NCBI GenBank assembly: GCA_002269645.1
Contig: NIVC01000184.1
Location: 434,001 to 498,000 of the forward strand
Length of the DNA stretch: 64,000 nt
Direction: 5' to 3'
Source of the DNA: Macrostomum lignano
Taxonomy: Eukaryota
The notes beneath the pieces are model-generated. The model ran no database searches and was not told the DNA's origin. It worked only from the letters and a program-made list of their open reading frames with translations. Position numbers and translations under genes: made by a program. This document shows, piece after piece, positions 4,601-37,061 of the stretch (position 1 is the stretch's first letter; each line of letters opens with the position of its first letter).

Positions 4601-7600
4601 TTTCACGATTCCAGCTCTAAAACCATGAGAAAAGTTGGATTCACGGGTCAATTCAATGCAATTTCAGGTATATACAATATGAAAGTGTCATCCAATTTAA
4701 CGATAGTAAATTTTAAATACATAAAATGGCCTTCAGTAAACCATTATTTCCAGGAAATGCTTTAGATATTCAGTCAGCTATAACAAAACTACCACCCATC
4801 TTCTGCACGATACTTTTACTGGGTCTTCTGTTTGCAATTCATTCAGATTGTATGCATGTGTAATGTTCGTCATTTTTGTCTATTTTTAGTAACAGAAAAA
4901 TAGACGAACTGGAGAGAAAGAATTGGTTGCCAAAATCCAAAACCAAAACCAAAGCTAAAACTTTTTTGGTCGGATGATTTGGTCGCGAGTATTGGTCAGA
5001 TTGAAATGTTTAGTGGGTGAGCGGGGGTAGAACCTCTACAGTATCTATTGAAGTGGCAAGTCTACGGGGGTCAGACAATAGCTGGCCATATTGTTGCGGT
5101 GTGAGCTTGTTTGTGTGTAGCGCGAATAGAAGCCCGAATTCCTGTGTTAGTAATCAGACGGTGTCTGCGACCCTTCGGGGCGATCGAGTGAAGTTTGCCT
5201 ACTTGCTTTGCTATAGCCGACCATATTGTTGCAATGCAAACTTGTTTGTGTGTAGCGCGAATAGAACCTCGAATTCCTGTGTCAATGCAATCAGACTGTC
5301 TGCGACCCTTCGGGGCAATTGAGTGAAGTTTGCCTACTCTGCCAAAAAACAACTCTGAGTCATAATGTAAGCAAAGAGGTCATGCAAGTTTCGAACTATT
5401 CAAAAAATACTTTGTGACTTGAAAAATGAAAACTACATGCCTAAATATTTCCTAGAAAAAGTGGAAGCTAATAACCCAAATGTACGAAATGCTCTACCAA
5501 AAAATACTATGATTCTATTATATTTTCTCAAATTAAAACCCACACTCGAAAGTCTCGACTAATTGCAGAAATTGATAAAGCTTACGATGAATATAAAGCA
5601 GAAATATTAAAACACACCGATTGTAAATGTCCCCCATATTTGTATTCATTCAGAGTATATCTTCACATGTTGATAAATGGGCATTGATTTCGAGACAGCA
5701 CATAAGGAATGATGAATTTTTCGTCATGCTGAAATTGAACATTTTCAAACTCCCCATAACCTTTGAGAAGTAAATTAAAACCGATAAAATATATCGTTGA
5801 ATTTATTTTTAATAAAATGGAAGGAAAAAATCAAAACGATTTAAGTGTCTCTCCTGTGATCGTACAGGATCCGCTTCAAAACCATGATGCACCACCACCA
5901 CCAAGATTGACAAATTTAAAACAAACAAAATCGTACGATAAACTAATTAATCTAAAACTAAAACGTAATTTTAGATTTGAAAGTTGCAGTATAACATGGA
6001 ATAGTAAAACAAAGAAAAAAATACCGTCAGGTATCCCAACCAAAGCAGATAGGAATTCAACCTCCCCACCATTTCGACCAGAGGTAGACAACATGATTTG
6101 GATAGATACTCGAAATTCAAATATAACCATAATCGATATTGATAATGCTGACCTATGCCCTAAGTTGAATGAACTGTGTATGACTCATTGTGATTGGATT
6201 GTTCAGACAAACAAGAGTCACCACTTTTACTTTAACAAGGTAGACAGATAAAAGTAACGATTCAACAAAGTGTGGGTTTTGATATTCCGGCTTTAGTATT
6301 TGCTATTATGCCGATGATGAAATTAAGGAATACAAACGTATAAAGCCCGAAGCTTTAATAGACATGCCAGATGTAATTATTAATGAGATAAATAGATTAA
6401 TTTAGCCACAGGATAAAAAACAAAACCAAGAATCCGATAAACAGGCACTAAAAAGCACCGTTCCATCACCCACTTGTGAAGGAGTTTCAAAGTTGTTAAA
6501 TATAATACAACACAAAAACCAAGACTATTATTTTTGGTACAAGGTAGCACTCATACTCCGCGACATAGACAGTGGTGATGAAATTTACAAAGTATTCACT
6601 GATTGGTCAAAAGTAAATTATGATAAGTTCGATTCCGAGTCATGTAAAAAAGTGTGGAATAGCACCAGTGCCAGCTCTGCTGATGCACAGGACAGACTTA
6701 CTATCGGTACGTTGAAGAAATGGGCTAGTGAAGAAAACTATGGTAAATATAAGGAATGGAAAAGCAAATATGATTATTATGGTAGGATTTAGTATCTTGA
6801 TGATAATTTCACTGACGTTAACATACCAACGTTGTTTATGAATATAAGAAGAATAATATAATTTACAATAGCGATGGTATTTACTATTTTGATGATGATA
6901 AGTGGAGAGAACTAAGTAGTATAAATGACATATTTCTTAAAATATCACACCTTGTTAGCAGTGAGCTAAACCACCGAAAGACTAGACTTGAAATTGCAAT
7001 TAAGAAGGCTGATGATAAAGAGAAGTTAAAAGCACTTGAAAAGAAACTAAAGAACACAATGAAGAATATAAATTCAATACAAGGAGCCAACAAACTCAAA
7101 CAGGTAATTACTTTGTTCAAAGAGAGGTTTACTAACAATGAAATTGAATTCGACATGAAATGGAATTTGCTGGGTTTGACGATGGAGTATATGACCTCAT
7201 TACAGGTGAGTTTCGCTAGTATAGATATGACGATTACGTTACTAAATCGGTGGGATATAATTACTCGGATGTACTTAGAGTGAGTGATGACGACTATGGC
7301 TTCATTGTTAATCTGCATAACCAAATCCATCCAGATCCAGAGAACAGAAAGAGTTGGGAATCCGTTATAGCCACAGCTCTAATGGGTAAGAATTTTGAAA
7401 ACTTTATAATGTTTGATGGCGCTGGTGGAAATGGCAAGGGGGTTGAGGACAACCTACTTCTTAGAACTCTAGAATCTGATTATGCAGCACCACTCAGTCC
7501 TGATGTTTTGAATTCACCAATAAGAATAGACAAGCCACAACCAGCCCTAGCACAAATTAATAAAAAGAGGTTGGTTATCAGTCAAGAAGTAGGCGGTGTC

Positions 7601-10600
7601 TTGAACAATGCATCAATAAAATTACTAACTGGTGGTGGGGTTATCCAAGCTACCATGGTAGAAATTTATATTCAAGCCAGTGTAATGTCGTTCTACACGC
7701 AACTCTGATAGTCGAATGCAACAACAAGCCTGACTTCAGACAAAATATTGGAGATGCGGAGAAGAGGAGAATTATCAATGTTAATTACCCGTGCAAATAT
7801 ACAACAGATAACGAAATGATTGATCCTGAGACACACACTTACAAGGCCGATCCATATTTGAAAAGTGAGGAGTTTAAGACTAAATATAAGTTTGCAGAGA
7901 TGAAACACCTACTAGAAATTTTCAAACAAACAAAAGGCGAAATATATCTATCGGAAAACGTAATTGAGAACACTAATGAATTCATACAGAATTGTAATTG
8001 GTTCGCGCACTTCTTTGAAGAGAATTATGAATTTTTAGAAACTGAGGAAAAAAATTTGTGCCTATTAGCGAAATTCACACTGCCGCAAGAGAGAGTGAAT
8101 ATTATAGAAACCTATCTAAATCAGAAAAACTAGAATTTCGACAGCAATGCGTAACTGATTTCTTCAAGAATCACAATGATTATTGTAAGTATTATAAGGA
8201 TAGATATAGGCGTAGGATAGATGGTAAACAACATGAAACTAGAAATGTGTTGCTACAGTGCAAGAAAAAAATAAACGAAGATGTTATCAATGAGATTACA
8301 TTGGTTGATAAAGAATAGATCTTATAGGATCCAAATAATATCTTTTATCATCTAAGTGACTCATTGTTTGTTTCATAATATCACGAATATATATTTTATT
8401 TCTATATTTTATATATTTTACAGTCATGCTTACATGGCTTCTTCTAATCTCTTTGTAATCTGTCAATAGTATGTTTTTAAATGTTTCAAACTTTATATTT
8501 GTACTGCTTTTATCAACTCCCTTGATCTTAACACACTCTCCTGAAACCGTATTGAAAGCATACTCCTTTGACCGCAGGAATACAGCTTCGAAAATTATCG
8601 AGCCATTCATTTGACCTTATTCAACCCGAGTCATTTGATATTCACTGGTAACTTTGATAACATTCTTTGTTTGTTCAAGAATTAGTGCAAAAATTAGTTC
8701 AAGAATTTGTAGCATTGTTAGCTGTATTAACACTTTTGCAATCATTGTACCAACTCCGGAGGCTGCTCCGATACCACCCAAAATTGCTGTTAGTAAGCCT
8801 AATAGAGGAATTATTCCACCTTCATGTTCTTTCTGTTTGTCTTGCAATTTTCGAATCTTCTCTTTAGAAAGATACCGCTTTTGCTTATTGACAGTAACAT
8901 ATCTTGGTTTCCCCTCTCGAACATATCGATTGAGTCTGGCTTCAGTGTTTTTCTCGCTCATTTTTAAGGTCAGAATTTCTTCAAACCATTGCCTTGTCTC
9001 AAAGACACTTGAGACTGTTCTGCTGATCCTAGAGCCTTTTTAACAATATCTTGAATGGCCTTGTTTGATTGTGAAGCTATCTGTTGCTCTTCTTCCATTC
9101 TTTTCTTTGCTTCTTTCTCTCTACGTTTTTTAAAAATATATTCCAGTTCCTCACCTGCTTTAGACATGTCACTGTATATTTTCTTTGCGTCGAATATGTT
9201 TTTAGATGCTGTTGCTGTTTTACCTATGGCATCAGCTCCACTCACAATTTTACTTCCATGATTTGATAAAAAGTTTGTGACACCACTGATCATATCACCG
9301 ATTCCTTCACCCTCTTTATTAACTAGTAGTTGTGAATCAGACGTTTCAATCTGACCTTTCGCCCGTTTGCAGTTTGTTCGGTAAGCGCTCGTTTTTAGTT
9401 GAAAAATTTGCTGGTAGAAGCTGGGATTTGTAAAATGATCCAATAATTTCTTCTCCATTCTCATCCTCAATAATGTAAGTTATGGGATTTGAGTACACAA
9501 ATTTCTTAATCGTAAAAACCTCCAATAATTTTCCAATAACCCTTTCGAACCTTTTCAAAGTGCTCTTTGAATCTATAGATATGAACTTTGTCACCTACTT
9601 TAAAGTTTGGTTTCTCATTTGAAACCTCGAAGGAAGGCTTTGGTACTCGCTCAGGATGTTTAGATGCTTCTGAAGGAGTTATCAGAATCTCTGAATGGAT
9701 TGTGTTGTTGTACTTATCAACAATAGCTGGCAATATGTGGAGCCACTTCTGGTTTCCTTGTAGATCAAATTCAAACCAGAGTTTATTTGTGAGAGTACGA
9801 TTGAACCTCTCAATCATTGCATTCTTAGACTCGCCATAAATTGAAAACATCTTGTTAATATACTCCCCGTTTTCATCTTTCTTTCTTATGTTGTCTTTTG
9901 AAAACGAGTATAGCTTGTACATATGCTAATTATAAAACTCCTTGCCTTCATCTACACAAAGTCTCTCTGATCGTCTTCCTGATTCCTTAAATACTTTTTG
10001 GAAAGCTTCTGCAACTTCCGCTCCCGTCTTTGTTTTCAAAGGAACTGCCCAAGCGTAACGTGTAAAATCATCTATGATAGTGAGTGCATATTTGTAACCT
10101 CTTTCAGGAGGAAGGATTATTATGTCTGCATGCCAAATTGTGTCTTTTGCATAGTGAATCATTTTTCTAAACAGTCTTGGTTTTCTGTTTTCCCTATGCA
10201 GCTTCACAGCATCTTCATAGCTAAGACCCTTTCCATAAATTGTTAGACAGTCTGTACAATTGTTGGGGTTGTGAGTATGAATGCCTAATCCAAACCGAAC
10301 TTTAGCTTTGATAATACGCTTTACTAGATTTCTAATGAGTCTCTCTTTCACAGACAAGTCACTGGTTGGAATAGCATCTAAATCAGTTATCATTGTTTCA
10401 TCAGCAATATGCTTCTTTGCTAGAGCTTCCTCTGGAGTTGAAGACGTTTTTTCAGCATCTCTATAGCTTTTGTCATGATAGTACGAGCGTAAGCAGTCCA
10501 ATCTATTGGGTTAATTGGTAGACTGTCATACCGAGGCCAGTCTGTAATTGGATTGAGTCTTTTGTCTAAATTTGTACCAGGCAGTTGTTCCTCAATCTTT

Positions 10601-12486
10601 CGAAAGAGGCTGTACTTTATCTTAAGGCTTCATCAGGATTGACCAGATCCTTCAGCCCCACCTCCATTAAGTCTCTGAACCTTCTCCATATCCTTGTCAA
10701 CTTCGTTCGGACTTAGGAGCTTGGCTGCGGATTTCCACCATGTCCTCAAGCTTGTTACCATTGGGAACAGGAATTACCTGTGTTCCTTCAGAAGATTTCT
10801 CAACTGAAGTGGTACTTGAGGCTGTTGTTGACGGAGTTCCCGCAATTCGAAGGTGTCGCCTATCATTAAGCACTTGTTTAATGTTGGTTATAATGTTTTT
10901 GTATTGATCTCCATAAAGAAATTTCAATGCAAATTCTCCTGGTATAAGGGTGATTCCATTGTCTAGTAAAATATTCTTAGGTTCCTTTGTAGTTTTATTG
11001 ATGCATACATAATACAACTGGTAGGTGGGATAAGAATTTGTATAGTCTAATAGTTTCTGATAATTCCTTTCACGACTTGATGAATTGTCCGTGTTATCAG
11101 AAGATTTAAGCTCTAATGCAATCTTTCGGTCAACGTGAACCAGGTCTATCTTTTTTACCTTCTCGAATCCAAAATAATTTTCTGCTAATATTTCATATAG
11201 TCTGCCTAGTCTCATTTGAATAACTTTAATCTTGTGTGAAATCTTTAACTCTTCTTGGAAAAGATCATGAAGAATTTGATCATGCCCAACCTTATCATCA
11301 ACTGGTTCAGTATAGAATTTTTCGAACTGTTTGCTCCATTTTTAGTTTAGAAAATTTAACAAGTGCTTATTCTATGACTAACAAGGACATTGACTTCCTC
11401 ACTCAGGCCACAACGTAACCTGCGAAAGAATACCCAGGAATATGAAATTCGCCAGGATGTTTTCCAGTGAAGAAGATGGGGGGGTAGTTTTGTTATAGCT
11501 GACTGAATATCTAATGCAGAACCTAGAAATAATGGTTTACTGAAGGCCATTTTATGTATTTAAAATTTACTATCGTTAAATTAGATGACACTTTCATATT
11601 GTATATACCTGAAATTGCATTGAACTGACCCGTGAATTTAACTTTTCTCATGGTTTTAGAGCTGGAATCGTGAAAATTGCACCTTTTCAAAATATTTGAA
11701 AAACACAAAAATCGCTGTTTTCAGACCATTTTCACCTGTTTTTAGTCATTTTTCACTTATTTTTGTGATTTTAAAAATGAGTGAGGGCATGAGGGCGAGG
11801 GCGCCCTCCTTTTTTAAAAGTATAAAAATTCTGAAAAATCTGTGTTCTGCGAAATATTCCACATGCCAATACCCACACATGCCCTCGCCCTTAAGCACCC
11901 TCACACAATATATAAATATATATATATATATTTTTACATATTTATATACTCATCACACCACCTTGCAACTCTGACCTCCTGGTAGTAGTAGTGTGATATA
12001 AGGGGCGAGTCATCCAGCGAGCTGGCGCGCACTGCGCCCGAGCAATAAGTGTGGCTCAGACCTTTATATCACACTACTACTTCAATTCTTTATAAATTGT
12101 TCTATAAACGTCTACTGCTTATGCTCAGGTATTTTAACGTCATTTTTTATATTTCATTCGATGTTCAGTTAACAGGCCGTAAGGTGCAATTTAGAGCGGT
12201 GCTTCACAGCGAATTCCTTTCGGCTAACAACGCCAACTGCGGAATATTTCTCACTCTGCTGTGCCGTCTGTTGCCATGGCAACAGCAGTCCGCCTCGGCA
12301 ACCGCAAAGCAACCTCCAGCGTTGCATCAGAACTTTGCTTGGCTTCCGTGTCCTCAGCTAGCTGACCCGCTGGTTTTGCCGGACGAGTTTGAGCAGACTC
12401 TGTCGAACTCTGCCAAACTGAACGAACATTGCAGCCACCTGTGCCTGCTAGGAGCCTGCAGTCATTCTGATTTTCGGCTCAATTGA
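1621..12486 (+). CDS. NUDT18: Nudix hydrolase 18-like (8-oxo-dGDP phosphatase); exons 1621-1787, 2493-2627, 3532-3590, 3706-3723, 3814-4093, 12169-12486; first exon(s) upstream of the window
   Basis: Spliced exons read IQEAKPSARGLWYLPAGRLELNESLE|DAVKREFLEEVGLQFEP (Nudix box) ...WIRVNFLG...GGKLK|NKPDEESLCAKW...GARIELRSADIIPLL...|LTGRKVQFRAVLHSEF...CGIFLTLLC. All junction phases are consistent; matches NUDT18 signatures from memory. Confidence 0.88.
4228..4804 (+). repeat. Left terminal inverted repeat of the Polinton-like element
   Basis: Reverse complement of 11471-12081 with a few substitutions and indels; the mirrored spurious ORFs 4314..4580 (-) and 11696..11974 (+) share the same N-terminal sequence. 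Confidence 0.95.
5085..5340 (+). repeat. Two-copy ~133 bp direct repeat inside the Polinton, next to the left TIR
   Basis: CCATATTGTTGC...GTGTGTAGCGCGAATAGAA...GTCTGCGACCCTTCGGGGC...GAGTGAAGTTTGCCTACT occurs twice. Confidence 0.85.
5817..8318 (+). pseudogene. Fragmented primase (prim-pol) - PriCT-2 - D5-like SF3 helicase
   Basis: Pieces read TIIDIDN...VQTNKSHHFYF (prim-pol); YYFWYKVALILRD...FTDWS...CKKVWNS...LTIGTLKKWA (PriCT-2); DDGVYDLITGEFR*YRYDDYVTKSVGYNY (D5_N); FDGAGGNGKG (Walker A), KRLVISQE, IKLLTGG. Broken by frameshifts and stops. Confidence 0.85.
8296..8610 (-). pseudogene. C-terminal remnant of a Polinton-type family B DNA polymerase
   Basis: FLRSKEYAF...KIKGV...FETFKNILL...MSHLDDKRYYL resembles the pPolB C-terminus (LRSKxY, KGV, DDKR). 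No exonuclease or palm motifs seen. Confidence 0.7.
8617..8961 (-). CDS. Polinton small basic/amphipathic putative virion-core protein
   Basis: A basic N-terminus is followed by EGGIIPLLGLLTAILGGIGAASGVG, resembling the GG-F/I-xP hydrophobic motif of Polinton/adintovirus core proteins. Assignment is inference. Confidence 0.5.
   Translation of the reverse strand: MSEKNTEARLNRYVREGKPRYVTVNKQKRYLSKEKIRKLQDKQKEHEGGIIPLLGLLTAILGGIGAASGVGTMIAKVLIQLTMLQILELIFALILEQTKNVIKVTSEYQMTRVE
8970..9470 (-). CDS. Polinton hypothetical protein (putative core protein)
   Basis: 166-aa open frame with GEGIGDMISG and a C-terminal GNGL, GxG-type motifs common in Polinton core proteins, plus a charged helical segment. 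Confidence 0.45.
   Translation of the reverse strand: MRMRMEKKLLDHFTNPSFYQQIFQLKTSAYRTNCKRAKGQIETSDSQLLVNKEGEGIGDMISGVTNFLSNHGSKIVSGADAIGKTATASKNIFDAKKIYSDMSKAGEELEYIFKKRREKEAKKRMEEEQQIASQSNKAIQDIVKKALGSAEQSQVSLRQGNGLKKF
9346..10690 (-). pseudogene. Parvovirus-type PLA2 domain in frame with a retroviral-like integrase (frameshifted)
   Basis: PGTNLDKRLNP...PINPID / YYHDKSY...KAKVRFGLG (PLA2X-like) is followed without a stop by LHRENRKPRLFRKM...TIWHADI...ALTIIDDFTRYAWAVPLKTK...LCVDEGKEFYN, then after a frameshift MIERFNRTL...YNNTIHS...FKVGDKV, then after another VFTIKK...PITYIIEDENGEEIIGSFY. Confidence 0.88.
10697..11339 (-). CDS. PD-(D/E)xK restriction-endonuclease-like protein (5' frameshift near 11315)
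   Basis: IQMRLGRLYEIL...KIDLVHVDRKIALELKSSDNTDNSSSRERNYQKL carries a D...ExK catalytic pattern and an NTxNSSS motif reminiscent of type II REase-like proteins. The frame extends upstream (YTEPVDDKVGHDQILHDLFQEELKISHKIKVIQ). Confidence 0.55.
11471..12081 (-). repeat. Right terminal inverted repeat of the Polinton-like element
   Basis: Inverted copy of 4228-4804 ending CACTACTACT, followed by TCAATT. Confidence 0.95.
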
Positions 12487-15515: not shown

Positions 15516-18500
15516 TCATCTCAGAGCGGGCAGCAGGTAGTTGCAGGCGAGGCGCACCCAGCCGGGCATGCCGTCGCCGCTGCGGCAGCCGATGCGGTTC
15601 AAAGTAACGGCGAATGACGGCGCGCCCAGCCAGAGGGCGCGGATCGGCGCCAGCAGCGCGTGCGACACGGCGTGCGGCAGGCAGTCGATGTAGCAGGAGG
15701 CGAGAACGCCGTCAATAGCGATGCAGCCGGTCAGGGTGAACGGAGCCAGCAGGCCTTGGCGAGTGACGCCTCGCTGAACTTCGACCACCGTCTCGAGCCG
15801 CGGCTGTCGTCCAGCTTCGTCCAGCAGTTGCACGGCGAGTCCCGGCCGGATGTCGCGCGCAGGCACGGCGGACAGACGGGTCGCCCGACCGTCGGGCTGA
15901 GCCGAGGTGAACAGCAGATGGCCGGAGCTGAGCGTCAGCTGGGCGCTCGTGGTCGACACCGTCACAAAGTCGGACGACCAAGCAGTCTCGTCACGGTGGC
16001 CCCACATGAAGACGGGCGAAAAGGCGGGCCGGCCGTCCTGCAGGCTGAGTACTGGCTGCCCCGCAGAGAGCTCGGAGAGGCGGACCCGGCCGTGCGGAGT
16101 CATCACCGTCGCGTCCAAGGGGAAGCACTTTCCTCTGCTGAGAACGGTAAGTTCAAGTTTTTTTAATTTATCACATTTTCCTGCGACAGACTACTTTTCA
16201 GTAGCAATATTGATGTAAAGAGTGCGCCTGTCGTGTTAATTGTGGCCAGCAAAAACCCCTCCGCGGAGGAAACCTTCCTATGGGGAAACTTCCTGCGAGG
16301 TTACTTCCTGCGAGGTTACTTCCTGCGAGGTTACTTCCTGCGGGGTAATTTCCTGCGGGGAAACCATTTGCGATTTACTTCCTGGGAGGAAACTTCCTGC
16401 GAGGTTACTTCCTGCGAGGAAACTTCCTGCGAGGTTACTTCCTGGGAGGAAACTTCCTGCGAGGTTACTTCCTGGGAGGAAACTTCCTGCGAGGTTACTT
16501 CCTGCGAGGTTACTTCCTGCAGGGAAACTTTCTGCGGGGAAACTTCCTGCGGGGAAACTTCCTGCGGGGAAACTTCCTGCGGGGAAACTTGTTAGTGGCT
16601 CGCACTGACATATCGGTATAAGACATACATGTATTAAAGGAAACAATAAGAAATCTCCATCGATTTACTCTATCATTACCGACCCAATCTGAGCAGCCAT
16701 TTCGTTAGCAACTCTGTCCATCTCTGTACTCATTGCCGCATCGCGTCTCGTTCGAAACTCTTCTCGAACTCGATCGCGCTCTCGCTCCTGCAAGTTGCGC
16801 AACCGCTCGTCCTCTTGCCGATTCAACTCCTTCGTGGCTTTCTGCAGCTCCAATTGCGCAAATACGAAATATTCGTTGGTGTAAGTCGCTCGGAAACTGG
16901 AAGACTCAGCTTCGGAATTGATTCTAGCCAAGTGATCGACACTGCACACCAGGTTGTAGACTTGCTCGGCCTGCGTTGCTGCACTGCGATTGCGGCTGTT
17001 GTCCAGCATGGTGATTCTGTTACCGCATCTCGTTATTAAGGAATCCAGCGCGCTGAGCTGTCGACGAGCGTTCTGCACCTCCTGGTAGAAGCGCAAGTCG
17101 CTGTTATCGAACGCATCGCCGTGTGTGTATGCGATAATTGCGTACCTGTGAATAGAAATCGATTAAGACACTTTTCAAAGACCGATAGGGGGTGTAACAG
17201 GACGTAAAACTTGAAGTTGTTTCACGAGAACAATGCACAAGGCTGGCAGTGTTTCCCTGGACTCGAAGACATCTCACCAAGCTGGTAGTGTTCCCCTGGA
17301 CTCGGAGACATGTCACCAAGCTGGTAGTGTTCCCCTGGACTCGGAGACGTGTCACCAAGCTGGTAGTGTTCCATTGGACACGGAGACATCTCACCAAGCT
17401 GGTAGTGTTCCCCTGGACTCGGAAACATCTCACTAAGCTGGTAGTGTTCCCCTGGACTCGGAGACATCTCACCAAGCTGGTAGTGTTCCCCTGGACTCGG
17501 AGACATGTCACTAAGCTGGTAGTGTTCCCCTGAACTCGGAGACGTGTCACCAAGCTGGTAGTGTTCCATTGGACACGGAGACATCTCACCAAGCTGGTAG
17601 TGTTCCCCTGGACTCGGAGACGTGTCACCAAGCTGGTAGTGTTCCATTGGACACGGAGACATCTCACCAAGCTGGTAGTGTTCCCCTGGACTCGGAGACG
17701 TGTCACCAAGCTGGTAGTGTTCCATTGGACACGGAGACATCTCACCAAGCTGGTAGTGTTCCCCTGGACTCGGAAACATCTCACTAAGCTGGTAGTGTTT
17801 CCCTGGACTCGGAGACATCTCACCAAGCTGGTAGTGTTCCCCTGGACTCGGAGACATGTCACTAAGCTGGTAGTGTTCCTCTGGACTCGGAGACATGTCA
17901 CCAAGCTTTTAATGTTCCCCTGGACTCAGAAAAATCTCATCAAGCTGGTAGTGTTCCCCTGGACTCGGAAACATCTCACTAAGCTGGTAGTGTTCCCCTG
18001 GACTCGGAAACATCTCACTAAGCTGGTAGTGTTCCCCTGGACTCGGAAACATCTCACTAAGCTGGTAGTGTTCCCCTGGACTCGGAAACATCTCACTAAG
18101 CTGGTAGTGTTTCACTGGACTCAGAAACATCTCTCGCACTGCCTATCCTCGGCGTGAAAATTTGGATGTGTTACATTTCCGCTTTAGCCCAACTCTGTGA
18201 CATTCGTGTGTAAAATTTGACTAAGCCCACAACAGTTGGCACTGGCTCACAATGACTCACTTATAGAACATCTCTCCAAACAGCTCCTCAAGCTTCTCCA
18301 CAGCTTTCCGCTCTTCGTCAGTGAACTTCACGTCCAACCGCAGTGTGATCACAAATGCGTGAACTCCGCCTTCGGCAAACATAGCGATGGCGTGACAGAT
18401 TTGTCTGAGGGCAGCTTCCGGGTTGCTGGTGTCCATTGTGCCGGGAGTGTCGACCACGGTTAGGTACCGACCCCTCACTAGTCTGGTCTCCTTTTTGCAG

Positions 18501-18808
18501 ACGCTTGTTTGCGAGACCAGACTGCCCGGCTCGCTGGTTAGGAACGGTCCGGGCGTGCCTAGCAACGCGTTGCCAAGGGAACTTTTGCCGCTGCCGCTTT
18601 TACCTAGGAGCATCATCCTCAGCTCGCCGCCGGGTGGGAAGTTCTGCGTGTTTTTTAGGGAGAAAAGTAAGATCTGTATTGATTGTTTAACCTGTTAGAA
18701 TGTAAGACGTGTATTGATTGTTTCACCTGTTGTAATATAAGCACTGTTTTCACTGAAAATCAGTGCCTTTATAATAATTCCAAAAGTTACCTGAGATCCT
18801 GCGTCCAT
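15516..18808 (-). CDS. GIMAP/AIG1 GTPase - coiled coil - Hint/Hog (Hedgehog-type autoprocessing) fusion; exons 18808-18791, 18643-18261, 17145-16669, 16137-15516 (499 aa)
   Basis: G1 LLGKSGSGKSSLGNALLG, G3 VVDTPG, FTDEE, G4 YTHGD and LITRCGNR mark an AIG1 domain. The Hog domain reads GK|CFPLDATV...FSPVFMWGHRD...LTLSSGHLLF...GLLAPFTLTGCIAIDGVLASCY followed by SRR-like HAVSHALLAPIRALW. GT-AG junctions with matching phases 0/2/2. Confidence 0.8.
16270..16592. repeat. 15-bp tandem repeat (ACTTCCTGCGAGGTT and variants) in the GIMAP-Hog intron 3
   Basis: Direct reading of the sequence. Confidence 0.95.
17235..18135. repeat. 39-bp tandem repeat, about 23 copies, in the GIMAP-Hog intron 2
   Basis: Unit ACCAAGCTGGTAGTGTTCCCCTGGACTCGGAGACATCTC; 13-aa periodicity in the overlapping ORFs. 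Confidence 0.95.
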
Positions 18809-19224
18809 TGCTTGCGAGCCTTTTTTGAGCCAGAAACCAAAAAACGGCAGTTAAAGCTGGAGGACTTTAGTCCCTGTCTCACAGTTTATACCTGTAGAGC
18901 ACCTACTGCTAAACTGTAAATGAAAAGAGTACAACAATAAGGTACTTCTTGAGCACAGAAGAGCCATTCGTCTATTGATGCTACTTTCAATACAAGAGCT
19001 CAGAATTTTTTGAGCACAAAATCTAACCCTGTCCCATTGTCTCATTCTTTCTTTCTGCCCAGAGGTGTACGGGGGTCCTGGGTTGCCTTTTCTTCAGAGA
19101 TAACTACAATGTTGCTGGTGTCTTGGATGGCAATTAGGGCTAACTTGAAGAATTCAAGCATTGCATGCACATTGTTAGTTAGGTCTTGGAAAAAATAATG
19201 CGCAGCAGGGTCTCTGCGGGTATT

Positions 19225-20226
19225 CTGGGCCTCAGGTCATCTGGGCCTCAGGTCCTCTGGGCCTCAGGTCCTCTGGGCCTCAGGTCCTCTGGGCCTCAGG
19301 TCCTCTGGGCCTCAGGTCCTCTGGGCCTCAGGTCCTCTGGGCCTCAGGTCCTCTGGGCCTCAGGTCCTCTGGGCCTCAGGTCCTCTGGGCCTCAGGTCCT
19401 CTGGGCCTCAGGTCCTCTGGGCCTCAGGTCCTCTGGGCCTCAGGTCCTCTGGGCCTCAGGTCCTCTGGGCCTCAGGTCCTCTGGGCCTCAGGTCCTCTGG
19501 GCCTCAGGTCCTCTGGGCCTCAGGTCCTCTGGGCCTCAGGTCCTCTGGGCCTCAGGTCCTCTGGGCCTCAGGTCCTCTGGGCCTCAGGTCCTCTGGGCCT
19601 CAGGTCCTCTGGGCCTCAGGTCCTCTGGGCCTCAGGTCCTCTGGGCCTCAGGTCCTCTGGGCCTCAGGTCCTCTGGGCCTCAGGTCCTCTGGGCCTCAGG
19701 TCCTCTGGGCCTCAGGTCCTCTGGGCCTCAGGTCCTCTGGGCCTCAGGTCCTCTGGGCCTCAGGTCCTCTGGGCCTCAGGTCCTCTGGGCCTCAGGTCCT
19801 CTGGGCCTCAGGTCCTCTGGGCCTCAGGTCCTCTGGGCCTCAGGTCCTCTGGGCCTCAGGTCCTCTGGGCCTCAGGTCCTCTGGGCCTCAGGTCCTCTGG
19901 GCCTCAGGTCCTCTGGGCCTCAGGTCCTCTGGGCCTCAGGTCCTCTGGGCCTCAGGTCCTCTGGGCCTCAGGTCCTCTGGGCCTCAGGTCCTCTGGGCCT
20001 CAGGTCCTCTGGGCCTCAGGTCCTCTGGGCCTCAGGTCCTCTGGGCCTCAGGTCCTCTGGGCCTCAGGTCCTCTGGGCCTCAGGTCCTCTGGGCCTCAGG
20101 TCCTCTGGGCCTCAGGTCCTCTGGGCCTCAGGTCCTCTGGGCCTCAGGTCCTCTGGGCCTCAGGTCCTCTGGGCCTCAGGTCCTCTGGGCCTCAGGTCCT
20201 CTGGGCCTCAGGTCCTCTGGGCCTCA
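19225..20226. repeat. Near-perfect 16-bp tandem repeat (CTGGGCCTCAGGTCCT)n, about 62 copies
   Basis: Direct reading; the 16-aa periodic ORF is a by-product. Confidence 0.98.
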
Positions 20227-20959
20227 GTTCGCAGCTTTGAGCGGCATTATACTCAAGCAGAAAATGGTTAACACCAAGCCGTCATCAAATATTCGATACT
20301 CGTATATCAACGGAATCTTTGTGTCTGCATGCAGTTTTGCAGTTTCCAAAAAGTGTGACACTTCTCTCCGCGGTTTGCGAACCCCTGCAATAAAATTCAT
20401 TCCTCAATTCCATTGAGCACTTGCCGAACGGAGGCACTGCGAGTAGTTCGGGATGATGATAAAGGATGACTGCAGGCTGCAAGAGCATATCCCCAATAAC
20501 CCCCCCCCATACCTGTTTAATCCGAGGCGATAAAACTTTATTGCGGAATTGCTATTGACTGCGTCACGCACACTGGCCCCAGATTCCTGCCACCGACAGG
20601 CAGCGCAGGAGGCTGGCAAACAACAATTTTTCGGGATTAAGGATCTCCATCAGTAGCGGTCTAGGCGGTCCCCTACACAGTTAGTTGTCTGGTCCGTGCC
20701 GTGTTTTTTTATTTTTCATTTCGAAGTATCGGCAGAATAATTATCAAGTTTGCATGCCGGGGCCGATTGCGTGTCGCTATGGCGAATTCTGTTGAACTGT
20801 ACACGGCGACTGCAGACAGAGTGGCATCGAGACAGGAAGAGCAGATCACGGACGTTGACAAGGGGAGGGGTTGGATCTTTAATTCTTTAATTGATTGTTT
20901 TCTAGCTTTGCTGTTTATGACATTTTTTTCATCTGCTCTCATTCTGTTGGCCTGATCTT

Positions 20960-21850
20960 CTATCCCACTCTTCTTCTACCCACTCTCCCTCTACCCACTC
21001 TCCCTCTACCCACTCTCCCTCTACCCACTCTCCCTCTACCCACTCTCCCTCTACCCACTCTCTCTCTACCCACTCTCCCTCTACCCACTCTCCCTCTACC
21101 CACTCTCCCTCTACCCACTCTCCCTCTACCCACTCTCCCTCTACCAACTCTCCCTCTACCCACTCTCCCTCTACCCACTCTCCCTCTACCCACTCTCCCT
21201 CTACCCACTCTCCCTCTACCCACTCTCCCTCTACCCACTCTCCCTCTACCCACTCTCCCTCTACCCACTCTCGATCTACCCACTCTCCCTCTACCCACTC
21301 TCCCTCTACCCACTCTCCCTCTACCCACTCTCCCTCTACCCACTCTCTCTCTACCCACTCTCCCTCTACCCACTCTCCCTCTACCCACTCTCCCTCTACC
21401 CACTCTCTCTCTACCCACTCTCCCTCTACCCACTCTCCCTCTACCCACTCTCCCTCTACCCACTCTCCCTCTACCCACTCTCCCTCTACCCACTCTCCCT
21501 CTCCCCACTCTCCCTCCACCCACTCTTCCTCTACCCACTCTTCCTCTACCCACTCTCCCTCCACCTACTCTCCCTCTACCCACTCTCCCTCTACCCACTC
21601 TCCCTCTACCCACTCTTCCTCTACCCACTCTCCCTCTACCCACTCTCCCTCTACCCACTCTTCCTCTACCCACTCTTCCTCTACCCACTCTTTCTCTACC
21701 CACTCTCCCTCTACCCACTCTTCCTCTACCCACTCTCCCTCTACCCACTCTCCCTCTACCCACTCTTCCTCTACCCACTCTTCCTCTACCCACTCTCCCT
21801 CTACCCACTCTCCCTCTACCCACTCTCCCTCTACCCACTCTCTCTCTACC
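20960..21850. repeat. 15-bp pyrimidine-rich tandem repeat (CTACCCACTCTCCCT)n
   Basis: Direct reading. Confidence 0.97.
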
Positions 21851-22249
21851 CTACACTCCCTCTATATCCACTGTATCTCTCCTTCACTCCTCTCATTCGC
21901 GTCAAAATTATCTAATTAAAAGGAAGATTTGAGTTCATTTCCTAAAAAAATATTTAGCAGTTGGTGAAAGCATCAAAATGTCACGACTCGCTGCTGCACC
22001 AGCCGGCACACTCGCTGTCACATTCGCTTCTTTGCCTCCTCTACCCACCCGCCTATACTCAATGAGTAGTTATTTAACTTGGAAAAGATCCCTGTTGAAA
22101 TTTGTCATTAGTGCAAGCTTTTCAATAAAAAAATGATAAATTATTTTACTCAAACAAAATTGTCTCAACAAAATAATGCTCGTACGTACATAACAACTGT
22201 GGTTTATTAGAAATATCATTGACATTGCAGTAGTACGAGTCACAGTTGG

Positions 22250-22620: not shown

Positions 22621-23267
22621 TAGTTGGAGGCGTTACCGTTGAGATACTCGGGCCAGCTCGAAGTGTCATGCTCTGCCCCCGTGCCACAAACCCGGTAAAA
22701 GGAGATATATTGGTTATTCCAGCCCGCTAATACAGTGCGACCCGCAGACAAGCTGGTTAGCAAAGATCAACACCAGGGGCAGCATGACCCCCCTCACGGG
22801 CCAGCCGAGAGACAGATAGAAGTATGCCGGAGCAGTTTTAAGCGCTGCTGCAAGGAACGTGACAATTCCTTGATGCCTGAGCAAAAATGCCGGGACAGAG
22901 TTCCCCTCACTTGTTTGCTGAGCGAGTAATCAAAAAAACCACGCGACTGAGGCCTCATCCTCCAGCATTGCCGCTGCTGTAAAAAATGAGCTCAAGGCAC
23001 AGGCAAATATGCACGAGTGTCAGTTTGTGGGATTCCGCTGGTTTTCGCGATCTTGGTTTGGCCTGTCAGGTGAAGATTCTGATCTGGGACAGTTGCTGCT
23101 GGGAAAGATCGGTGCCTGCCACTGCCACCTCTGCTGACCTGTTGAGCTCATGAGCACGAATTGCTGAGCTGGGGGGCAAGTGCGATAAAATAAATAGATG
23201 GAAGTACGGGGATAGATTGACTGAAATAGAGGCACCAAGGCAACGGCATAGAAAGACACTCGGACAG

Positions 23268-23745
<478 letters not shown>

Positions 23746-24234
23746 AGTCGCTTAGACAGACCAGCCTGAACCGGCAACATCAGAGTTCTTCCCCGAGCAA
23801 CCTCTGTTTGCACAGGGAGCGCACAGGCGTCGCCACGAGCAGGCCGTGTGGCCGGTGCGGCCGCCAAAAGTGGATGATGGAGAACCAACCGCCCAACTGA
23901 TGCGATATCGAAATTTGAAACCTGAGAGTCAAGAGGAGCGCGGTGAGCTTGGGCTGGTGGCTGGCGCCCCCTCCCACGATCTCAGGATCAGGTTTCACTT
24001 TTAGTATAAGCGACTATCGAGCTGCAGTTCAATGTAAAGGCTTGCGAGGAATTCAGAAAGATTGAAACGGATCAACAGTAAGAGTTTGCATGAACGAGTT
24101 ATCTTCAAATTTTTGTTATAATAATCTTTGTTTAACTTATCTACTCAATTTTTATTGGCACACGTGTGAGGTGTTTGGTTGGCTATTCATATGCAGAAGT
24201 TGAGAGTATGTTTACATGAACCTGCGTCACTTCT

Positions 24235-26420: not shown

Positions 26421-27569
26421 TCAACTGTCATGACAGCTGGACATCAAATGGTTGAGCATGTGCTCCTCGAACGCGGCTTGACTGACTTGGTGACCGCCGC
26501 ACACTTCGCATTGCCACTGCTCACCAGCCCCGGCTGTTCCAGAGTTTCCGCAGGCGCCGCAGCCGCCCTGCTGGTGCTTGCGCAGATAGGCCGACCGCTT
26601 GAACCCGCGGCCGCAGCTCCTGCACGCAAACTGCTTGTTCGCGGCCTCCTTGGTTTTGACCGCCCGACAGTCGGGCCGCAGGATGGCGTCGATGCTGAAC
26701 TGCAGACCGCTGCTGCTGCACTTCCTGCCGCTTATGGCGACGTCAGGCTTCGGCTTGTGCCAGCGTCGGTGGCTGGCCAGGTTGGCGGAGCAGTTGAACA
26801 GCTTGCCGCAGTCGGAGCACCTGTACTCCTCGTACTCGATGCACGGGCACCGGTGCTGAGCCAGCTGGAACGCGTCGCCGAAGGTCACCCAGCACAGCTG
26901 GCAGACGAACTCGCCAATCCGATTGACAATTTTTGACAGCGCAGCCTCGGCCTCGGGCGTCACTTCGACGAAGTTAAATGTGGTCACAATGTCCAGCTGG
27001 GCGGCTTGGCTTGTCGGGCGAGCGCGACGGCTTCTTGTGGACTTCGACAGAGCGCGGATGATTGTGCCGCTGACTGGGCTGGCCTTCTGGCTGGGGCAGC
27101 ACCTCTGAGCTGGCGGACTCGGCTTGCTGATGACGCCGCTTGGCTTGGCCTTCGGCGTTGAGACTGTCGGACGAGGAGGCGTCGAAGGCGGCGGCGGCGG
27201 CGGCGGCGCTGGAGCTGTTGACTTGGCCAAATCGGCCTCTTTGCCGGTGCCGCCCACAGCAGCAGGCTGACCGGTGCAAACCAGTGGCGGCTGCACCGGC
27301 TGCAGGGCAGCAACAAACTGAAGGTATTGCTGCTGGATTTGCTGCTGGATTTGCTGCTGGATCTTCAGCGACTCAAGAAACGATACGGCGTTTACAGCGG
27401 CTGAGCAGTGAGGAAAAAATCCACCAAAGTCTGGTACTGATGCAGGAGACGGCAGCTGAGGCTGCTGGGGCAGCATCTGATGCAGCATCTGAGCTCGAAT
27501 GGCAGCTGGGAGAGCGAAGCCTCCATCATAAAACTTGTACGGGTTGAACTTCGGATCGTTCGCCTCCAT
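26421..27569 (-). CDS. INSM1: Insulinoma-associated 1 / nerfin / egl-46-like C2H2 zinc-finger transcription factor
   Basis: IGEFVCQLCWVTFGDAFQLAQHRCPCIEYEEYRCSDCGKLFNCSANLASHRRWHKP matches the INSM1 ZF1-ZF2 signature, followed by two more C2H2-type fingers. Start ATG (MEANDPKF) is uncertain. Confidence 0.9.
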   Translation of the reverse strand: MEANDPKFNPYKFYDGGFALPAAIRAQMLHQMLPQQPQLPSPASVPDFGGFFPHCSAAVNAVSFLESLKIQQQIQQQIQQQYLQFVAALQPVQPPLVCTGQPAAVGGTGKEADLAKSTAPAPPPPPPPSTPPRPTVSTPKAKPSGVISKPSPPAQRCCPSQKASPVSGTIIRALSKSTRSRRARPTSQAAQLDIVTTFNFVEVTPEAEAALSKIVNRIGEFVCQLCWVTFGDAFQLAQHRCPCIEYEEYRCSDCGKLFNCSANLASHRRWHKPKPDVAISGRKCSSSGLQFSIDAILRPDCRAVKTKEAANKQFACRSCGRGFKRSAYLRKHQQGGCGACGNSGTAGAGEQWQCEVCGGHQVSQAAFEEHMLNHLMSSCHDS

Positions 27570-28029
27570 GCGGTGTCTCCGGGGAATTCTTACTTTCGAC
27601 AGGTAAAGCTCGGGTTTGCTATTAAGAGCAGCGAATTGAGGACTCAACCTGATAAGCGAAGGGAGTTTTTTGTGCTCGCACAATCTGCAGAATCCATCCT
27701 CAGCTTCAGCCTCAGCCTCCTCCGGAATCCTTGCAAGCAGGCGCGCGAGCCAGCCAACCGCCGGCTCTCATTCCCTCACTCTGCCTCCAGGCCCGCCAGC
27801 ATTCCTTCGTTCTTCATCTCTCTCTCCTGACTGCAGGCAGAATCTCATTGGCTGGGAGGCGGACTCGGACCTGGTGGGGGTGGGGGGGCTACCGGAGCAA
27901 CTCTCCTATTTTCCCCATCATTGTCTTCTCCATTACGCTGTCTTTCGGCGCTATAGATTCTCATCAGACCTTCATTTGAGATCCCACAACTTGAGCTGTG
28001 AGATTTCAAAGCTTGAAGATTTCATTATT

Positions 28030-28370: not shown

Positions 28371-29619
28371 TCGAGATCCCTATCTAAAGCTTTAATCCTA
28401 GCAAATTTTAAGCTTCAAGATTTCAAAACATCATTATCGTTTCTAAGATTTAAGACCATTTGATAGAACAGATATTTTTGCATGTACGCTCGTAAGAGCT
28501 GGGTAAATAGGATGCCTATACATTCGTGTCTCGCACACATCATCAGACATTCGAATTGAATTCAACTTAGCAGTATATACATGTACATGTATGCTCGATC
28601 AACATATGCACTAGCTTTGACTAGCCTATACTTGTTAAATGCTCGTTTATTGCCTGTACACAGGTGGCATATATATATGGTCAATCCATCATATTTTTTA
28701 CACACAGCTCAGCAATCGTATACAAGCACGGGGGCCACTATGTGCAGGCATTCGTTCACGGTCTCATTATACCTGTGCACACATTGCCAATTCTGATGGC
28801 AGTATAATATGGTAGTAGTATAGTTAGTAGCAGTGCCAACAGCCAAATATATTATAGCATCAAGCGAGCCTTTATAACATCGGATTCTGATTGATTCAAA
28901 TTTATATTGTGTAGCCACCCAAACGAGAGCTGAACAAACTGATACTGCAGGTATAAGGGCTGCTCTGTATACAGGGGCCCCCCAAGTAGAAGAATGCGAT
29001 ACCCCGGCCGTGCAGCGATGTGTACACAAGAATTCGAGAGCTTGATATACATGCATGCAGATAGATAGAGATTGAGAGATGCTGCTTGCTTGCATGGCTG
29101 CTGCGGCTGCTGCATTATAGGCGCAGATTAAATTCCTCAAACAGTGAGGGTCTCCATAGCCCCACATGCGGCCTGTGCTCAACCAGCATAGGTCAGTGAG
29201 CCTTGGAAGCTCATATCCGCTCTCCGTCATCTCCCTCTCTCTCGCTCCCAGCTTCCCCAACCCCCCACTTGTTAGAGGAAGGATCATAGAGCTCTGTAGT
29301 CGATTTCCTAATTTTTCATTAAGCAAAGGCCCCCCACAGTTGGGCCCGAAATCACGGCTGAGTAGAGTCGGAGAGGAAATTGAAATATTAACAGCGGTGC
29401 GCAGACACATGCTATGCCAAAGAGCCCCAATTTCCCGAGCAAGTTTAACATTTTTCCTCTGACTCCTCTTTAATTTGGTGCGAGTAATTTCTTTTGGGAA
29501 TCAATCCGAAGCGTGAGAAATCATAAACTGAAAGAATTGCAGGCCTGTAATGTATACTGATGCCTGAGAATGGCTATAATTTAAACAGGCGCTTGTGCAT
29601 TTGCCATGATATGAGTAAC

Positions 29620-30400
29620 CAGGGACTTTAGCATCAGGGGTTCTAGCACTAGGGGATTTAACACCAGGGGCGCCAGCGCCAGGCGCTTTAACACCAGGGA
29701 CTTTAGCACCAGGGGCTTTAGCACCAGGGGCTTTAGCACCAGGGGCTTTAGCACCAGGGGCTTTAGCACCAGGGGCTTTAACACCAGGGGCTTTAGCACC
29801 AGGGGCTTTAGCACCAGGGGCTTTAGCACCAGGGGCTTTAGCGCCAGGGGCTTTAACACCAGGGGCTTTAGCACCAGGGGCTTTAGCACCAGGGGCTTTA
29901 GCACCAGGGGCTTTAGCATCAGGGGCTTTAGCACCAGGGGCTTTAGCACCAGGGACTTTAGAACCAGGGGCTTTAGCATCATGGGCTTTAGCACCAGGGG
30001 CTTTAGCACCAGGGACTTTAGAACCAGGGGCTTTAGCATCATGGGCTTTAGCACCAGGGGCTTTAGCATTAGGGGCTTTAACACCAGGGGCTTTAGCACC
30101 AGGGGCTTTAGCACCAGGGGCTTTAACACCAGGGGCTTTAGCACCAGGGGCTTTAGAACCAGGGGCTTTAGCATCATGGGCTTTAGCACCAGGGGCTTTA
30201 GCATTAGGGGCTTTAACACCAGGGGCTTTAGCACCAGGGGCTTTAGCACCAGGGGCTTTAACACCAGGGGCTTTAGCACCAGGGGCTTTAGAACCAGGGG
30301 CTTTAGCATCATGGGCTTTAGCACCAGGGGCTTTAGAACCAGGGGCTTTAGCATCATGGGCTTTAGCACCAGAGGCTTTAGCACCAGGGGATTTAGCACC
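29620..30400. repeat. 15-bp tandem repeat (GGGGCTTTAGCACCA)n
   Basis: Direct reading; lies within open frame 29501..30475 (-). Confidence 0.95.
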
Positions 30401-31229
30401 ACAGGGCCGCTGAGATACTGCAGGGGTTCCGAAACGCAGCATCATAATCATTGAAAAAAGTAATAAAAATTTCACTTCAAAGTCGTATTGTCAACATGCA
30501 AGGTTTTGTTGATCCTAATACCATTTTAATCCTAAATAAATAGTCAAAGAAGCATTTTCCAATTTCCAAACTAAATCTTAAGCGTCTTTGCAGTGTGAGA
30601 AAAAAAAGAATTTCTTAGTGTTAATTCAGAGTCGCCCTGCCCATCCATTTCTTAGAAAGGATTACAGCAATGCGGCAGCAGTATTAAGACAGCTTTCTTC
30701 AGACACAGAATCTGCTTCCGACTCAATAACAATTGTCTTTGCCAGCCTGTGTTGCAGATTTTAATTATCTGCACACAGAACTGATTCTCTCGCATCAATC
30801 GGCCCAACTAATCTCCCGCATCCGCACAGGTAGGGGGATGCGGCATGAAGGATGGGATGGAATCCTGTGCAGTAAAGCTACAGCCGGTCAAGCTTCAGCA
30901 TGCGCCTCCGGGCGGAGCGAGCCATGGTAAACCGCGCTCGAGCATTCTATCAGATCTGCAGCCACTTGAGCATGTCCCGGATTTTTTTACCAACAGACCA
31001 TGCGCACAGAATATCTGGTAAAGGAATAAATTCTGACTCTCAATTGAATACCGAATTGCAATCCGATACCCCGGCAGAGGCTCTCCAAGGATTTTGCCAA
31101 CCGTGCGCGGCTTTCTCTCCGGCTGGGAGTGCAGGAATACGACAGGTGCGCACGGCTGATCCGAGGGCCAGAGGGGCGGCTGCGGGTCAGGGAGACCGAT
31201 GGGAGAAACGGGATGACAGCAGGGAGGAG

Positions 31230-32212
31230 GGTCAGTGAGAGGGAGATGGGGAATGAGAGTGAAAAGGGAAGTGAGATCGGAAGTGAGAGTGAGAGTGAGA
31301 TGGAGAGTGAGAGTGAGATGGGGAGCGAGAGGGAGATGGGGAGTGAGAGAGATGGAGAGTGAGATTGGGAGTGAGATGGAGACTGAGATAGGGGGTTAGG
31401 GTGAGATGGAGAATGAGATGGGGAGCGAGAGTGAGATGGGGAGTGAGAGTGAGATGGGGAGCGAGAGTGAGATGGGGAGCGAGAGTGAGATGGGGAGCGA
31501 GAGTGAGATGGGGAGTGAGATTGGGAGTGAGTTTGGGAGTGAAATGGGGAGCGAGAGTGAGATGGGGAGCGAGAGTGAGATGGGGAGTGAGAGTGAGATG
31601 GGGAGCGAGAGTGAGATGGGGAGCGAGAGTGAGATGGGGAGCGAGAGTGAGATGGGGAGTGAGATTGGGAGTGAGTTTGGGAGTGAAATGGGGAGCGAGA
31701 GTGAGATGGGGAGCGAGAGTGAGATGGGGAGTGAGATTGGGAGAGAGTTTCGGAGTGAGATTGAGATGGAGAGTGAGATTGGGAGTAAGATTGGGAGTGA
31801 GAGTAAGATTGGTAGTGAGATTGGGAGTGAGAGTGAGAGTGAGAGTGAGATGGAGAGTGAGGGTGAGATGGAGAGTTGGTGAGATGGAGAATGAGATGGA
31901 GAGCGAGAGTGGTATGGGAGTGAGATTGGGAGCGGGAGTGAGATGGGGAGTGAGAGTGAGATGGAGAGTGAGGGTGAGATGGAGAGTTGGTGAGATGGAG
32001 AATGAGATGGAGAGCGAGAGTGGTATGGGAGTGAGATTGGGAGCGGGAGTGAGATGGGGAGTGAGAGTGAGATGGAGACTGAGATGGGGAGTGAGATTGG
32101 GAGTGAGAGTGAGATGGAGACTGAGATGGGGAGTGAGATTGGGAGTGAGAGTGAGATGGAGACTGAGATGGGGAATGAGGGTGAGATGGAGGGTGAGATG
32201 GAGGGTGCTGGT
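31230..32212. repeat. GA-rich degenerate repeat (18-bp GAGAGTGAGATGGGGAGC core)
   Basis: Direct reading; nearly pyrimidine-free on the + strand apart from T. Confidence 0.93.
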
Positions 32213-32734: not shown

Positions 32735-33632
<898 letters not shown>

Positions 33633-37045: not shown

Positions 37046-37061
37046 GGCATGAATTGCGTCA

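Follow-up and report, generated by a model that had tools for sequence, protein, structure and literature searches.

A Macrostomum lignano gene joining an AIG1-type GTPase to a Hedgehog-like Hog domain, and its predicted autoprocessing

Hedgehog ligands are regarded as the sole proteins that are covalently esterified to cholesterol (PMC7242414). A Hog domain residing on a cytosolic GTPase prompts one to ask if lipidation by autocatalysis could also operate beyond the secretory pathway and developmental signalling. A protein predicted to be of this kind is encoded in the flatworm Macrostomum lignano, by a gene at positions 15516-18808 on the minus strand of a 64,000-nt stretch of contig NIVC01000184.1 (assembly GCA_002269645.1), which is referred to as the window and supplies all coordinates below. 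Our analysis indicates that the locus is almost certainly a single gene with an AIG1 GTPase, a coiled coil and a Hog domain. Taken as a whole, it probably represents an expressed gene for a 499-residue cytosolic precursor, in which the GTPase (residues ~14-214) and a stalk (~225-293) precede a Hog domain that would undergo autoprocessing by analogy with Hedgehog.

The gene comprises four exons and three GT-AG introns, and its spliced open reading frame (ORF) of 1500 nt consists of 499 codons and a TGA stop, with intron phases 0, 2 and 2. Each acceptor (CACGCAG, TTCACAG and TTCTCAG) follows a pyrimidine-rich tract, and the donors read GTAACT, GTGAGT and GTAAAT. Exon 1 (18791-18808) supplies the ATG and five further codons (MDAGSQ) ahead of the donor GTAACT, identical to the N-terminus of the GenBank protein PAA88525.1. 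It is followed by intron 1 (18644-18790; 147 nt, phase 0, GC content 0.32) and by exon 2 (18261-18643), which encodes residues 7-134 and thereby the first half of the AIG1 domain, including the P-loop GKSGSGKS (18581-18604), the DTPG motif and the GIMAP conserved box. Intron 2 (17146-18260; 1115 nt, phase 2) is mostly made up of a 39-nt minisatellite (22.9 copies, 17242-18133), and the long ORFs listed within it are repeat artefacts. The second half of the AIG1 domain with the G4 residue Asp144 and a long helical coiled-coil region are encoded by exon 3 (16669-17145; residues 134-293). Intron 3 (16138-16668; 531 nt, phase 2, GTAAAT...CTCAG) contains a 15/30-nt minisatellite (20/10 copies) at 16266-16590. 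Exon 4 (15516-16137) encodes the DRGK linker and the Hog domain, that is, the Hint fold (297-~442) and a tail (443-499) resembling Hedgehog's sterol recognition region (SRR), up to the TGA at 15516-15518. Across the 16669/16137 junction the product reads ...GSVMI-D-RGK|CFP, and the translation carries GKSGSGKS, DTPG, DRGK|CFP, WGHRD, LTLSSGH and GVLASCY.

A four-exon coding sequence of 1500 nt with matching phases had been proposed in a sequence-only reading of the locus. It equals PAA88525.1 residue for residue (BOX15_Mlig029920g1, hypothetical protein; 100% identity over 100% length), and the same protein is named AIG1-type G domain-containing protein in UniRef. The annotated GenBank gene spans 3293 nt, which is the span of 15516-18808, and the match of the model to the annotated gene is far beyond chance. 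Since the M. lignano annotation was built from a genome-guided RNA-seq transcriptome with StringTie, TACO, TBONE and TransDecoder (PMC5730564), the splice pattern has indirect transcript support. An exact-match look-up of the gene sequence returned the genome contig only and no RNA-derived contig. Two variants of the transcript can be read from the locus. An in-frame TAA (16665-16667) sits inside intron 3 directly after the donor, and retention of this intron would yield a 293-residue GTPase-only product ending in SVMIE. An alternative in-frame donor lies 15 nt upstream (16684|16683, ATTGG|GTCGGT, within 16676-16690); its use would remove SVMID just before the predicted cleavage site and reproduces the partial GenBank model g2 (PAA51970.1), which stems from another copy of the gene.

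Both halves of the protein are recognized by Pfam, with AIG1 (PF04548) at residues 15-214 (E 1.3e-36; 126.4 bits vs a cut-off of 27) and Hint (PF01079) at residues 289-461 (E 6.4e-31; 108.1 bits vs 29.7); the Pfam search gave no match to the Hedge domain (HH_signal). A sequence search of the PDB matched the N-terminal half to GIMAP7, 4, 2, 1 and 5, and the C-terminal half to the C-terminal domains of Sonic and Drosophila Hedgehog. The G motifs comprise the P-loop GKSGSGKS (20-27), DTPG (71-74) and the G4 residue D144, with D71-G74 and D144 being invariant in the family alignment; the segment GGVHAFVITLRLDVKFTDEE aligns to the conserved box of GIMAP7/4/2, between G3 and G4. We built an AlphaFold2 model on a 16-sequence family alignment (mean predicted local distance difference test score, pLDDT, 79.6). 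It displays a G domain (14-213), helices at 189-213, 225-250 and 254-293, the last two forming the stalk, a beta-rich Hint module (297-440) and terminal helices at 448-464, 466-474 and 485-498. In Foldseek comparisons, the modelled G domain superposed on GIMAP7 (3zjc) with TM-scores of 0.83-0.84, and the modelled Hint module on Drosophila HhC with TM-scores of 0.91 (1at0, r.m.s.d. 1.7 Å) and 0.90 (6tyy), the r.m.s.d. values being 1.7-1.8 Å. The modelled N-terminal half thus folds like the G domain of GIMAPs and is extended by helices at its C-terminal end.

The P-loop begins at residue 20, which leaves no room for a signal peptide. The sole hydrophobic maximum (1.65 on the Kyte-Doolittle scale, 19-residue window) lies within the beta core of the Hint module, so that no transmembrane helix is expected; the earlier statement that the protein lacks a transmembrane tail holds, as no segment of transmembrane grade occurs outside this core. 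The protein is hence predicted to be cytosolic. It shares with vertebrate GIMAPs the AIG1 G domain, the conserved box and the C-terminal helical extension, and finds among them its best matches by sequence and by structure, but differs from them by having a Hint domain and no transmembrane segment. Vertebrate GIMAPs either carry a transmembrane tail anchor or are soluble, and we know of none with a Hint domain.

Autoprocessing of Hedgehog involves C1, D46, T69/H72 of a TxxH motif and C143 (PMC12054796), and the flatworm protein has a counterpart at each of these positions. The predicted scissile bond (16125-16130) connects Lys296 (16130-16128) with Cys297 (16127-16125). Cys297 corresponds to Hedgehog C1/C258, and the alignments to 1AT0 and 6TYY start precisely there, in line with the catalytic cysteine that had been placed at the domain junction. 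The triplet CFP is present in 15 of 16 AIG1-Hog proteins, the sixteenth (P0127) being without that segment, and C297 is invariant in the alignment (A4) once P0127 is excluded. His340 (15996-15998) occupies the position of the general base D46/D303, where it aligns with His46 of 6TYY and Asp46 of 1AT0. The counterpart of TxxH is Ser363-Ser-Gly-His366 (15918-15929), a conservative replacement of Thr by Ser; family members have either Ser or Thr at the first position, and the His never changes. Cys441 (15693-15695), which belongs to the SCY motif (ASCY), matches Hedgehog C143/C400, the role of C143 being described in PMC12054796, and two amphioxus members have STY instead of SCY. All in all, C297, H340, H366 and Y442 are invariant, while Ser/Thr363 and Cys441 are kept in both M. 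lignano paralogs (see below) and across phyla. This conservation pattern indicates that the catalytic set is kept under selection.

Two residues set the flatworm active site apart from that of Hedgehog, namely His instead of Asp as general base and Lys instead of Gly before the cysteine (K|CFP vs G|CF). The sequence-only reading had pointed out both and had suggested that the nucleophile may differ. Both replacements are real and proved to be traits of the family. His is found at the D46 position in 16 of 16 aligned AIG1-Hog proteins and in 8 of 10 non-AIG Hog proteins covering it; the latter were sampled from the 11 matches of a word-indexed search with a 14-sequence Hog alignment, and none of these matches was a known AIG1-Hog member. 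Asp occurs only in the three Hedgehog-type sequences of the alignment (Drosophila Hh, P0173, named 'indian hedgehog B protein-like', and the fragment P0175). Moreover, the natural flatworm sequence equals an engineered state of Hedgehog: 6TYY is a D46H (D303H) variant of Drosophila HhC that retains the wild-type structure and cholesterolysis efficiency and has a wider sterol range (PMC9163320), and a D46H Hedgehog mutant also processes in human cells (PMC12054796). Since His is the rule in AIG1-Hog proteins and in most sampled non-Hedgehog Hog proteins, and D303H Hedgehog is active, the Asp general base is specific to Hedgehog rather than defining for Hog domains, and His is, judged by this analogy, competent at that position. 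The residue preceding the cysteine varies among members (K, T, Q, D, E, G, A, F, S or W). With His usual in Hog proteins other than Hedgehog, cholesterolysis kept in D303H and the -1 residue variable, neither replacement specifically supports a different nucleophile. The flatworm protein also resembles other non-Hedgehog Hog proteins, i.e. nematode Warthog, Groundhog and Quahog and those of protists, algae and moss, in placing the Hog domain on an unrelated N-terminal cargo and, for most of those sampled, in the His at D46 (PMC2362128). Those proteins, however, are for the most part secreted and have signal peptides as well as N-termini rich in Cys (PMC2362128), whereas the flatworm protein is predicted to be cytosolic and has an enzyme as cargo.

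The SRR-like tail (15519-15692, residues 442-499 when counted from Tyr442) contains the motifs SHALLAPIRAL and DGMPGWVRLAC and is predicted to be helical. It aligns with both SRR helices of Drosophila Hedgehog (SHALLAPIRAL/AHWGLAPMRLL and DGMPGWVRLACNYLLP/NGIHWYANALYKVKDYVLP, the second Drosophila segment being NGIHWYANALY). The ~57 residues after SCY are conserved from flatworm to lancelet, the family tail following the pattern H.LL.P.R.LY...G[MI]P.W. These alignments argue for a full Hog domain and not a bare Hint domain. The previously proposed order of AIG1 GTPase, coiled coil and full Hog domain with an SRR-like tail is thus borne out by Pfam, the PDB matches, AlphaFold and Foldseek, and the tail alignment. 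With Hedgehog HhC (1AT0, 6TYY) the flatworm domain has in common the Hint fold, C1, a TxxH-type motif, the cysteine of SCY and an SRR-like tail of two helices, but the protein has neither the Hedge signalling domain nor a signal peptide.

How widespread is this architecture? An exhaustive HMMER search with a profile of the two M. lignano paralogs gave 13,153 matches, mostly GIMAPs with several AIG1 domains, of which we inspected the best 150. Among these, at least 14 further cluster representatives have an AIG1 domain followed by a C-terminal Hint domain. They belong to a bivalve (Potamilus), to gastropods (two species of Haliotis, Physella, Bradybaena and Plakobranchus), to a brachiopod (Lingula) and to two lancelets (Branchiostoma lanceolatum and B. 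belcheri); one is an ENA sequence. The animal proteins agree with the flatworm ones in domain order, the CFP start, the His general base, S/TxxH, SCY and the conserved tail. They differ in that the flatworm proteins are short (499 and 509 residues) and do not have the CARD or long coiled coils of some relatives, and in the Hog part the identity of the flatworm proteins to the others is just 28-36%. A neighbour-joining tree built on Hog domains, without fungal or coral sequences, paired the two M. lignano paralogs (74/100) and did not recover a clade of AIG-linked domains (bootstrap 0-4/100). The shared tail motifs and the His favour common descent of the AIG1-Hint fusions.

The sequence-only reading knew of no described GIMAP-Hog family, and this claim of novelty does not stand, by the measure that the reading itself had set. 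Burglin 2008 (PMC2362128, citing Requena 2002) describes GmGIN1 of Glomus mosseae as an AIG1-like GTPase with a bona fide Hog domain and without a signal peptide, and a large expansion of proteins combining AIG1 and Hint (MEROPS C46) is known from Glomeromycotina (PMC8778642). Further cases are four AIG1+Hint transcripts of the coral Acropora millepora (PMC3723955), an AIG gene with AIG1 and Hint of the snail Biomphalaria glabrata (PMC7053062) and CARD+AIG1+HINT proteins of amphioxus (PMC12373286). The flatworm protein matches the fungal ones in the AIG1-like GTPase lying N-terminal to the Hog domain on one polypeptide and, as described in PMC2362128 and PMC8778642, in the missing signal peptide; the fungal proteins are not from animals, and the comparison is with their published descriptions. 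Our literature search found no paper on AIG1-Hog genes of Macrostomum or any flatworm. The gene is therefore a flatworm member of a known, biochemically unexplored AIG1-Hint (GmGIN1-like) architecture and not a new family; the architecture is already published, and the gene itself is already annotated publicly, as a hypothetical protein. A sterol-type modification of GmGIN1 was reportedly only speculated upon by Requena and coworkers in 2002.

By analogy with Hedgehog, the precursor would mature as follows. Cys297 would attack the carbonyl of Lys296 in an N-to-S acyl shift aided by Ser363 and His366, and the acyl group may move on to Cys441. A hydroxyl nucleophile, held in place by the SRR-like tail and with His340 as its activator, would then resolve the thioester; this nucleophile may be a sterol or another membrane lipid or, failing that, water. 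The products would be a GTPase/coiled-coil fragment of 296 residues and a Hog fragment of 203 residues. With a lipid as nucleophile, the GTPase would gain a C-terminal, ester-linked membrane anchor that would functionally take the place of the tail-anchoring transmembrane helix found in some vertebrate GIMAPs. Self-cleavage at K296|C297 is, in our judgement and by this analogy, likely. The transfer of a lipid or sterol to the GTPase fragment is the least certain step, and we propose it tentatively.

Several observations weigh against this interpretation. Hedgehog processing occurs in the secretory pathway, whereas a cytosolic location is predicted for the protein studied here. Compared with the Hedgehog SRR the tail is short, it has MPGW instead of the strict HWY motif, and it is modelled with moderate confidence (pLDDT 62-84). 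Lys at -1, where Hedgehog has Gly, could slow the acyl shift. Transcript support is indirect, coming through the annotation pipeline and not from reads or cDNA. Lastly, the literature search returned no biochemical study of any AIG1-Hog protein, which makes cleavage and adduct a matter of pure inference.

Some of these points would also fit a Hog domain that cleaves itself and merely hydrolyses, with water or a small soluble nucleophile resolving the thioester and no lipid being attached. The domain would then be a self-removing cap that frees a soluble GTPase/coiled-coil fragment, and it may serve as an auto-inhibitory or localisation module. Conserved Hint catalytic residues are what this possibility predicts as well; the predicted cytosolic location, which is not the compartment in which Hedgehog encounters cholesterol, the short tail that has diverged from the HWY motif and the variable -1 residue speak for it. 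Plain hydrolysis would, however, not need a tail that is conserved from flatworm to lancelet and aligned with both SRR helices, and the general-base position, which in Hedgehog is needed just for sterol transfer (PMC12054796), is invariantly His. Because tail and general base are conserved and hydrolysis needs neither, we argue for a hydroxyl compound bound by the protein, for instance a sterol or lipid of the membrane, as natural nucleophile. Cleavage by hydrolysis alone is conceivable, and we would not call it the probable outcome.

Alternatively, the Hint/Hog domain may be catalytically silent and act in binding or oligomerisation, the 499-residue protein working uncleaved. For no family member is there experimental evidence of cleavage, and the Lys in place of the Gly before the cysteine as well as the STY in two amphioxus members could be signs of lost activity. 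Against this stands the retention of Cys1, His at D46, S/TxxH and SCY in two paralogs of 38% identity and in four phyla, which is hard to explain without catalysis. We consider a silent domain improbable.

The third alternative concerns the gene model itself, namely that a GIMAP gene ending at the TAA at 16665-16667 has been wrongly joined to a separate downstream Hint gene or trans-spliced cistron. The stop codon directly after the donor, the polycistronic, trans-spliced transcription units of M. lignano (PMC5730564) and the GC content of exon 4 (0.69 vs 0.51-0.55 in the other exons) all invite this thought. The strongest evidence against it comes from a paralog, BOX15_Mlig016153 (P0002), a protein of 509 residues that is 38% identical over 96% coverage and likewise has AIG1 and Hint. 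Its residues 14-509 are encoded by a single uninterrupted genomic ORF of 496 codons (L002:6590-8080) that is present on two contigs, so that GTPase, coiled coil and Hog domain are contiguous without any splice prediction. The sole intron of the paralog follows about codon 13, near the position of intron 1 of the window gene, and the two proteins align colinearly across the exon 3/4 junction. The GC step recurs inside this one exon (0.67 vs 0.56); it is hence a property of Hog-coding sequence and no sign of a separate gene, and the composition of exon 4 was rejected as an indication of foreign or separate origin. In exon 4 the first in-frame Met comes 8 residues past Cys297, and a stand-alone Hint gene would thus be devoid of its nucleophile. 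The exons are connected in frame in three annotated models, and both the near-identical copy g3 (PAA51968.1) and UniRef A0A1I8G0N7, a model from an independent assembly, combine the exons in the way of the window gene; the same domain order also recurs in the other AIG1-Hint proteins counted above. The single-exon paralog and the lack of a usable start codon in exon 4 are our grounds for rejecting a two-gene or mis-spliced origin, and the chance of a mis-joined model is accordingly very small.

Introns 2 and 3 of the window gene, which are largely minisatellite, are both missing from the paralog; they were either gained or expanded in the window gene or lost in the paralog, e.g. by retroposition. 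Of each AIG1-Hog gene there are two or three near-identical copies, located on separate contigs (Mlig029920g1-3 and Mlig016153g1-3). This fits the DV1 genome, which PMC5730564 describes as duplicated. A tblastn search found no further AIG1 or Hint copy within the window, and the gene is therefore not part of a tandem GIMAP cluster there.

An intein-like protein-splicing element, as implied for coral proteins in PMC3723955, is the least probable alternative of all and was rejected: although the Hint fold and weak Foldseek matches to inteins (ranks 37-49) recall such elements, Hedgehog HhC gives by far the best matches, the tail is SRR-like instead of a block G with terminal Asn and +1 nucleophile, and with the protein ending in ...NYLLPALR, no extein after the C-terminal Hog domain and hence no C-extein to ligate exists.

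The surroundings of the gene are rich in repeats and mobile elements. A 16-nt tandem repeat (62.8 copies, 99% matches) occupies 19224-20227, ~400 nt upstream of the start codon, and gives rise to spurious ORFs of more than 350 residues in three frames. Long low-complexity, apparently tandem-repeat tracts are exceptionally dense further on (20900-21930, 23020-23750, 29580-30450, 31000-32300, 32650-33680, 35840-36480 and 36760-37700), each with long repeat-derived ORFs on both strands; the M. lignano genome is reported to be rich in repeats (PMC5730564). The region 5760-11341, with ORFs on both strands, has the look of a mobile or virus-like element in decay. Its plus strand carries an ORF with a PriCT_2 primase C-terminal domain (6406-6789; Pfam E 1e-10) and, after it, AT-rich ORFs that gave no Pfam match (6822-8130). 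On its minus strand are an rve integrase core (9929-10510; Pfam E 4e-10), a weak Pfam match to rve_3 (9509-9925) and, adjoining the rve ORF, an ORF (10700-11341) that Pfam matches, above its cut-off and with E 5.9e-7, to the Eco47II restriction endonuclease family, an uncommon find in the genome of an animal. A GenBank gene with a NUDIX domain, on the plus strand and ending near 12486, overlaps this element. The minus strand of the window further contains a fragment of a retrotransposon ORF of the long interspersed nuclear element (LINE) type with Exo_endo_phos_2 and the start of RVT_1 (2-1510, cut by the window edge), a 448-residue ORF with C2H2 zinc fingers (26424-27767) and a 677-residue ORF without a Pfam match (58647-60677).

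Genome papers on fungi, corals, snails and lancelets have come across the AIG1-Hint architecture time and again. If the proposed lipid transfer takes place, the Hog domain would equip an immune-type GTPase with a lipid anchor after translation, and this anchor would be a switchable substitute for the tail anchor of GIMAPs. More tentatively still, AIG1-Hog proteins may form a second class of proteins esterified to sterols or lipids, independent of Hedgehog and cytosolic, with a D46H-type site of relaxed sterol specificity and an anchor installed upon self-cleavage. The M. lignano genes are a convenient entry point to this family, because they are compact (two paralog groups of ~500 residues) and transgenesis is established in the species (PMC5730564). 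They are valuable as a compact and genetically tractable case for asking whether Hog domains lipidate cytosolic proteins.

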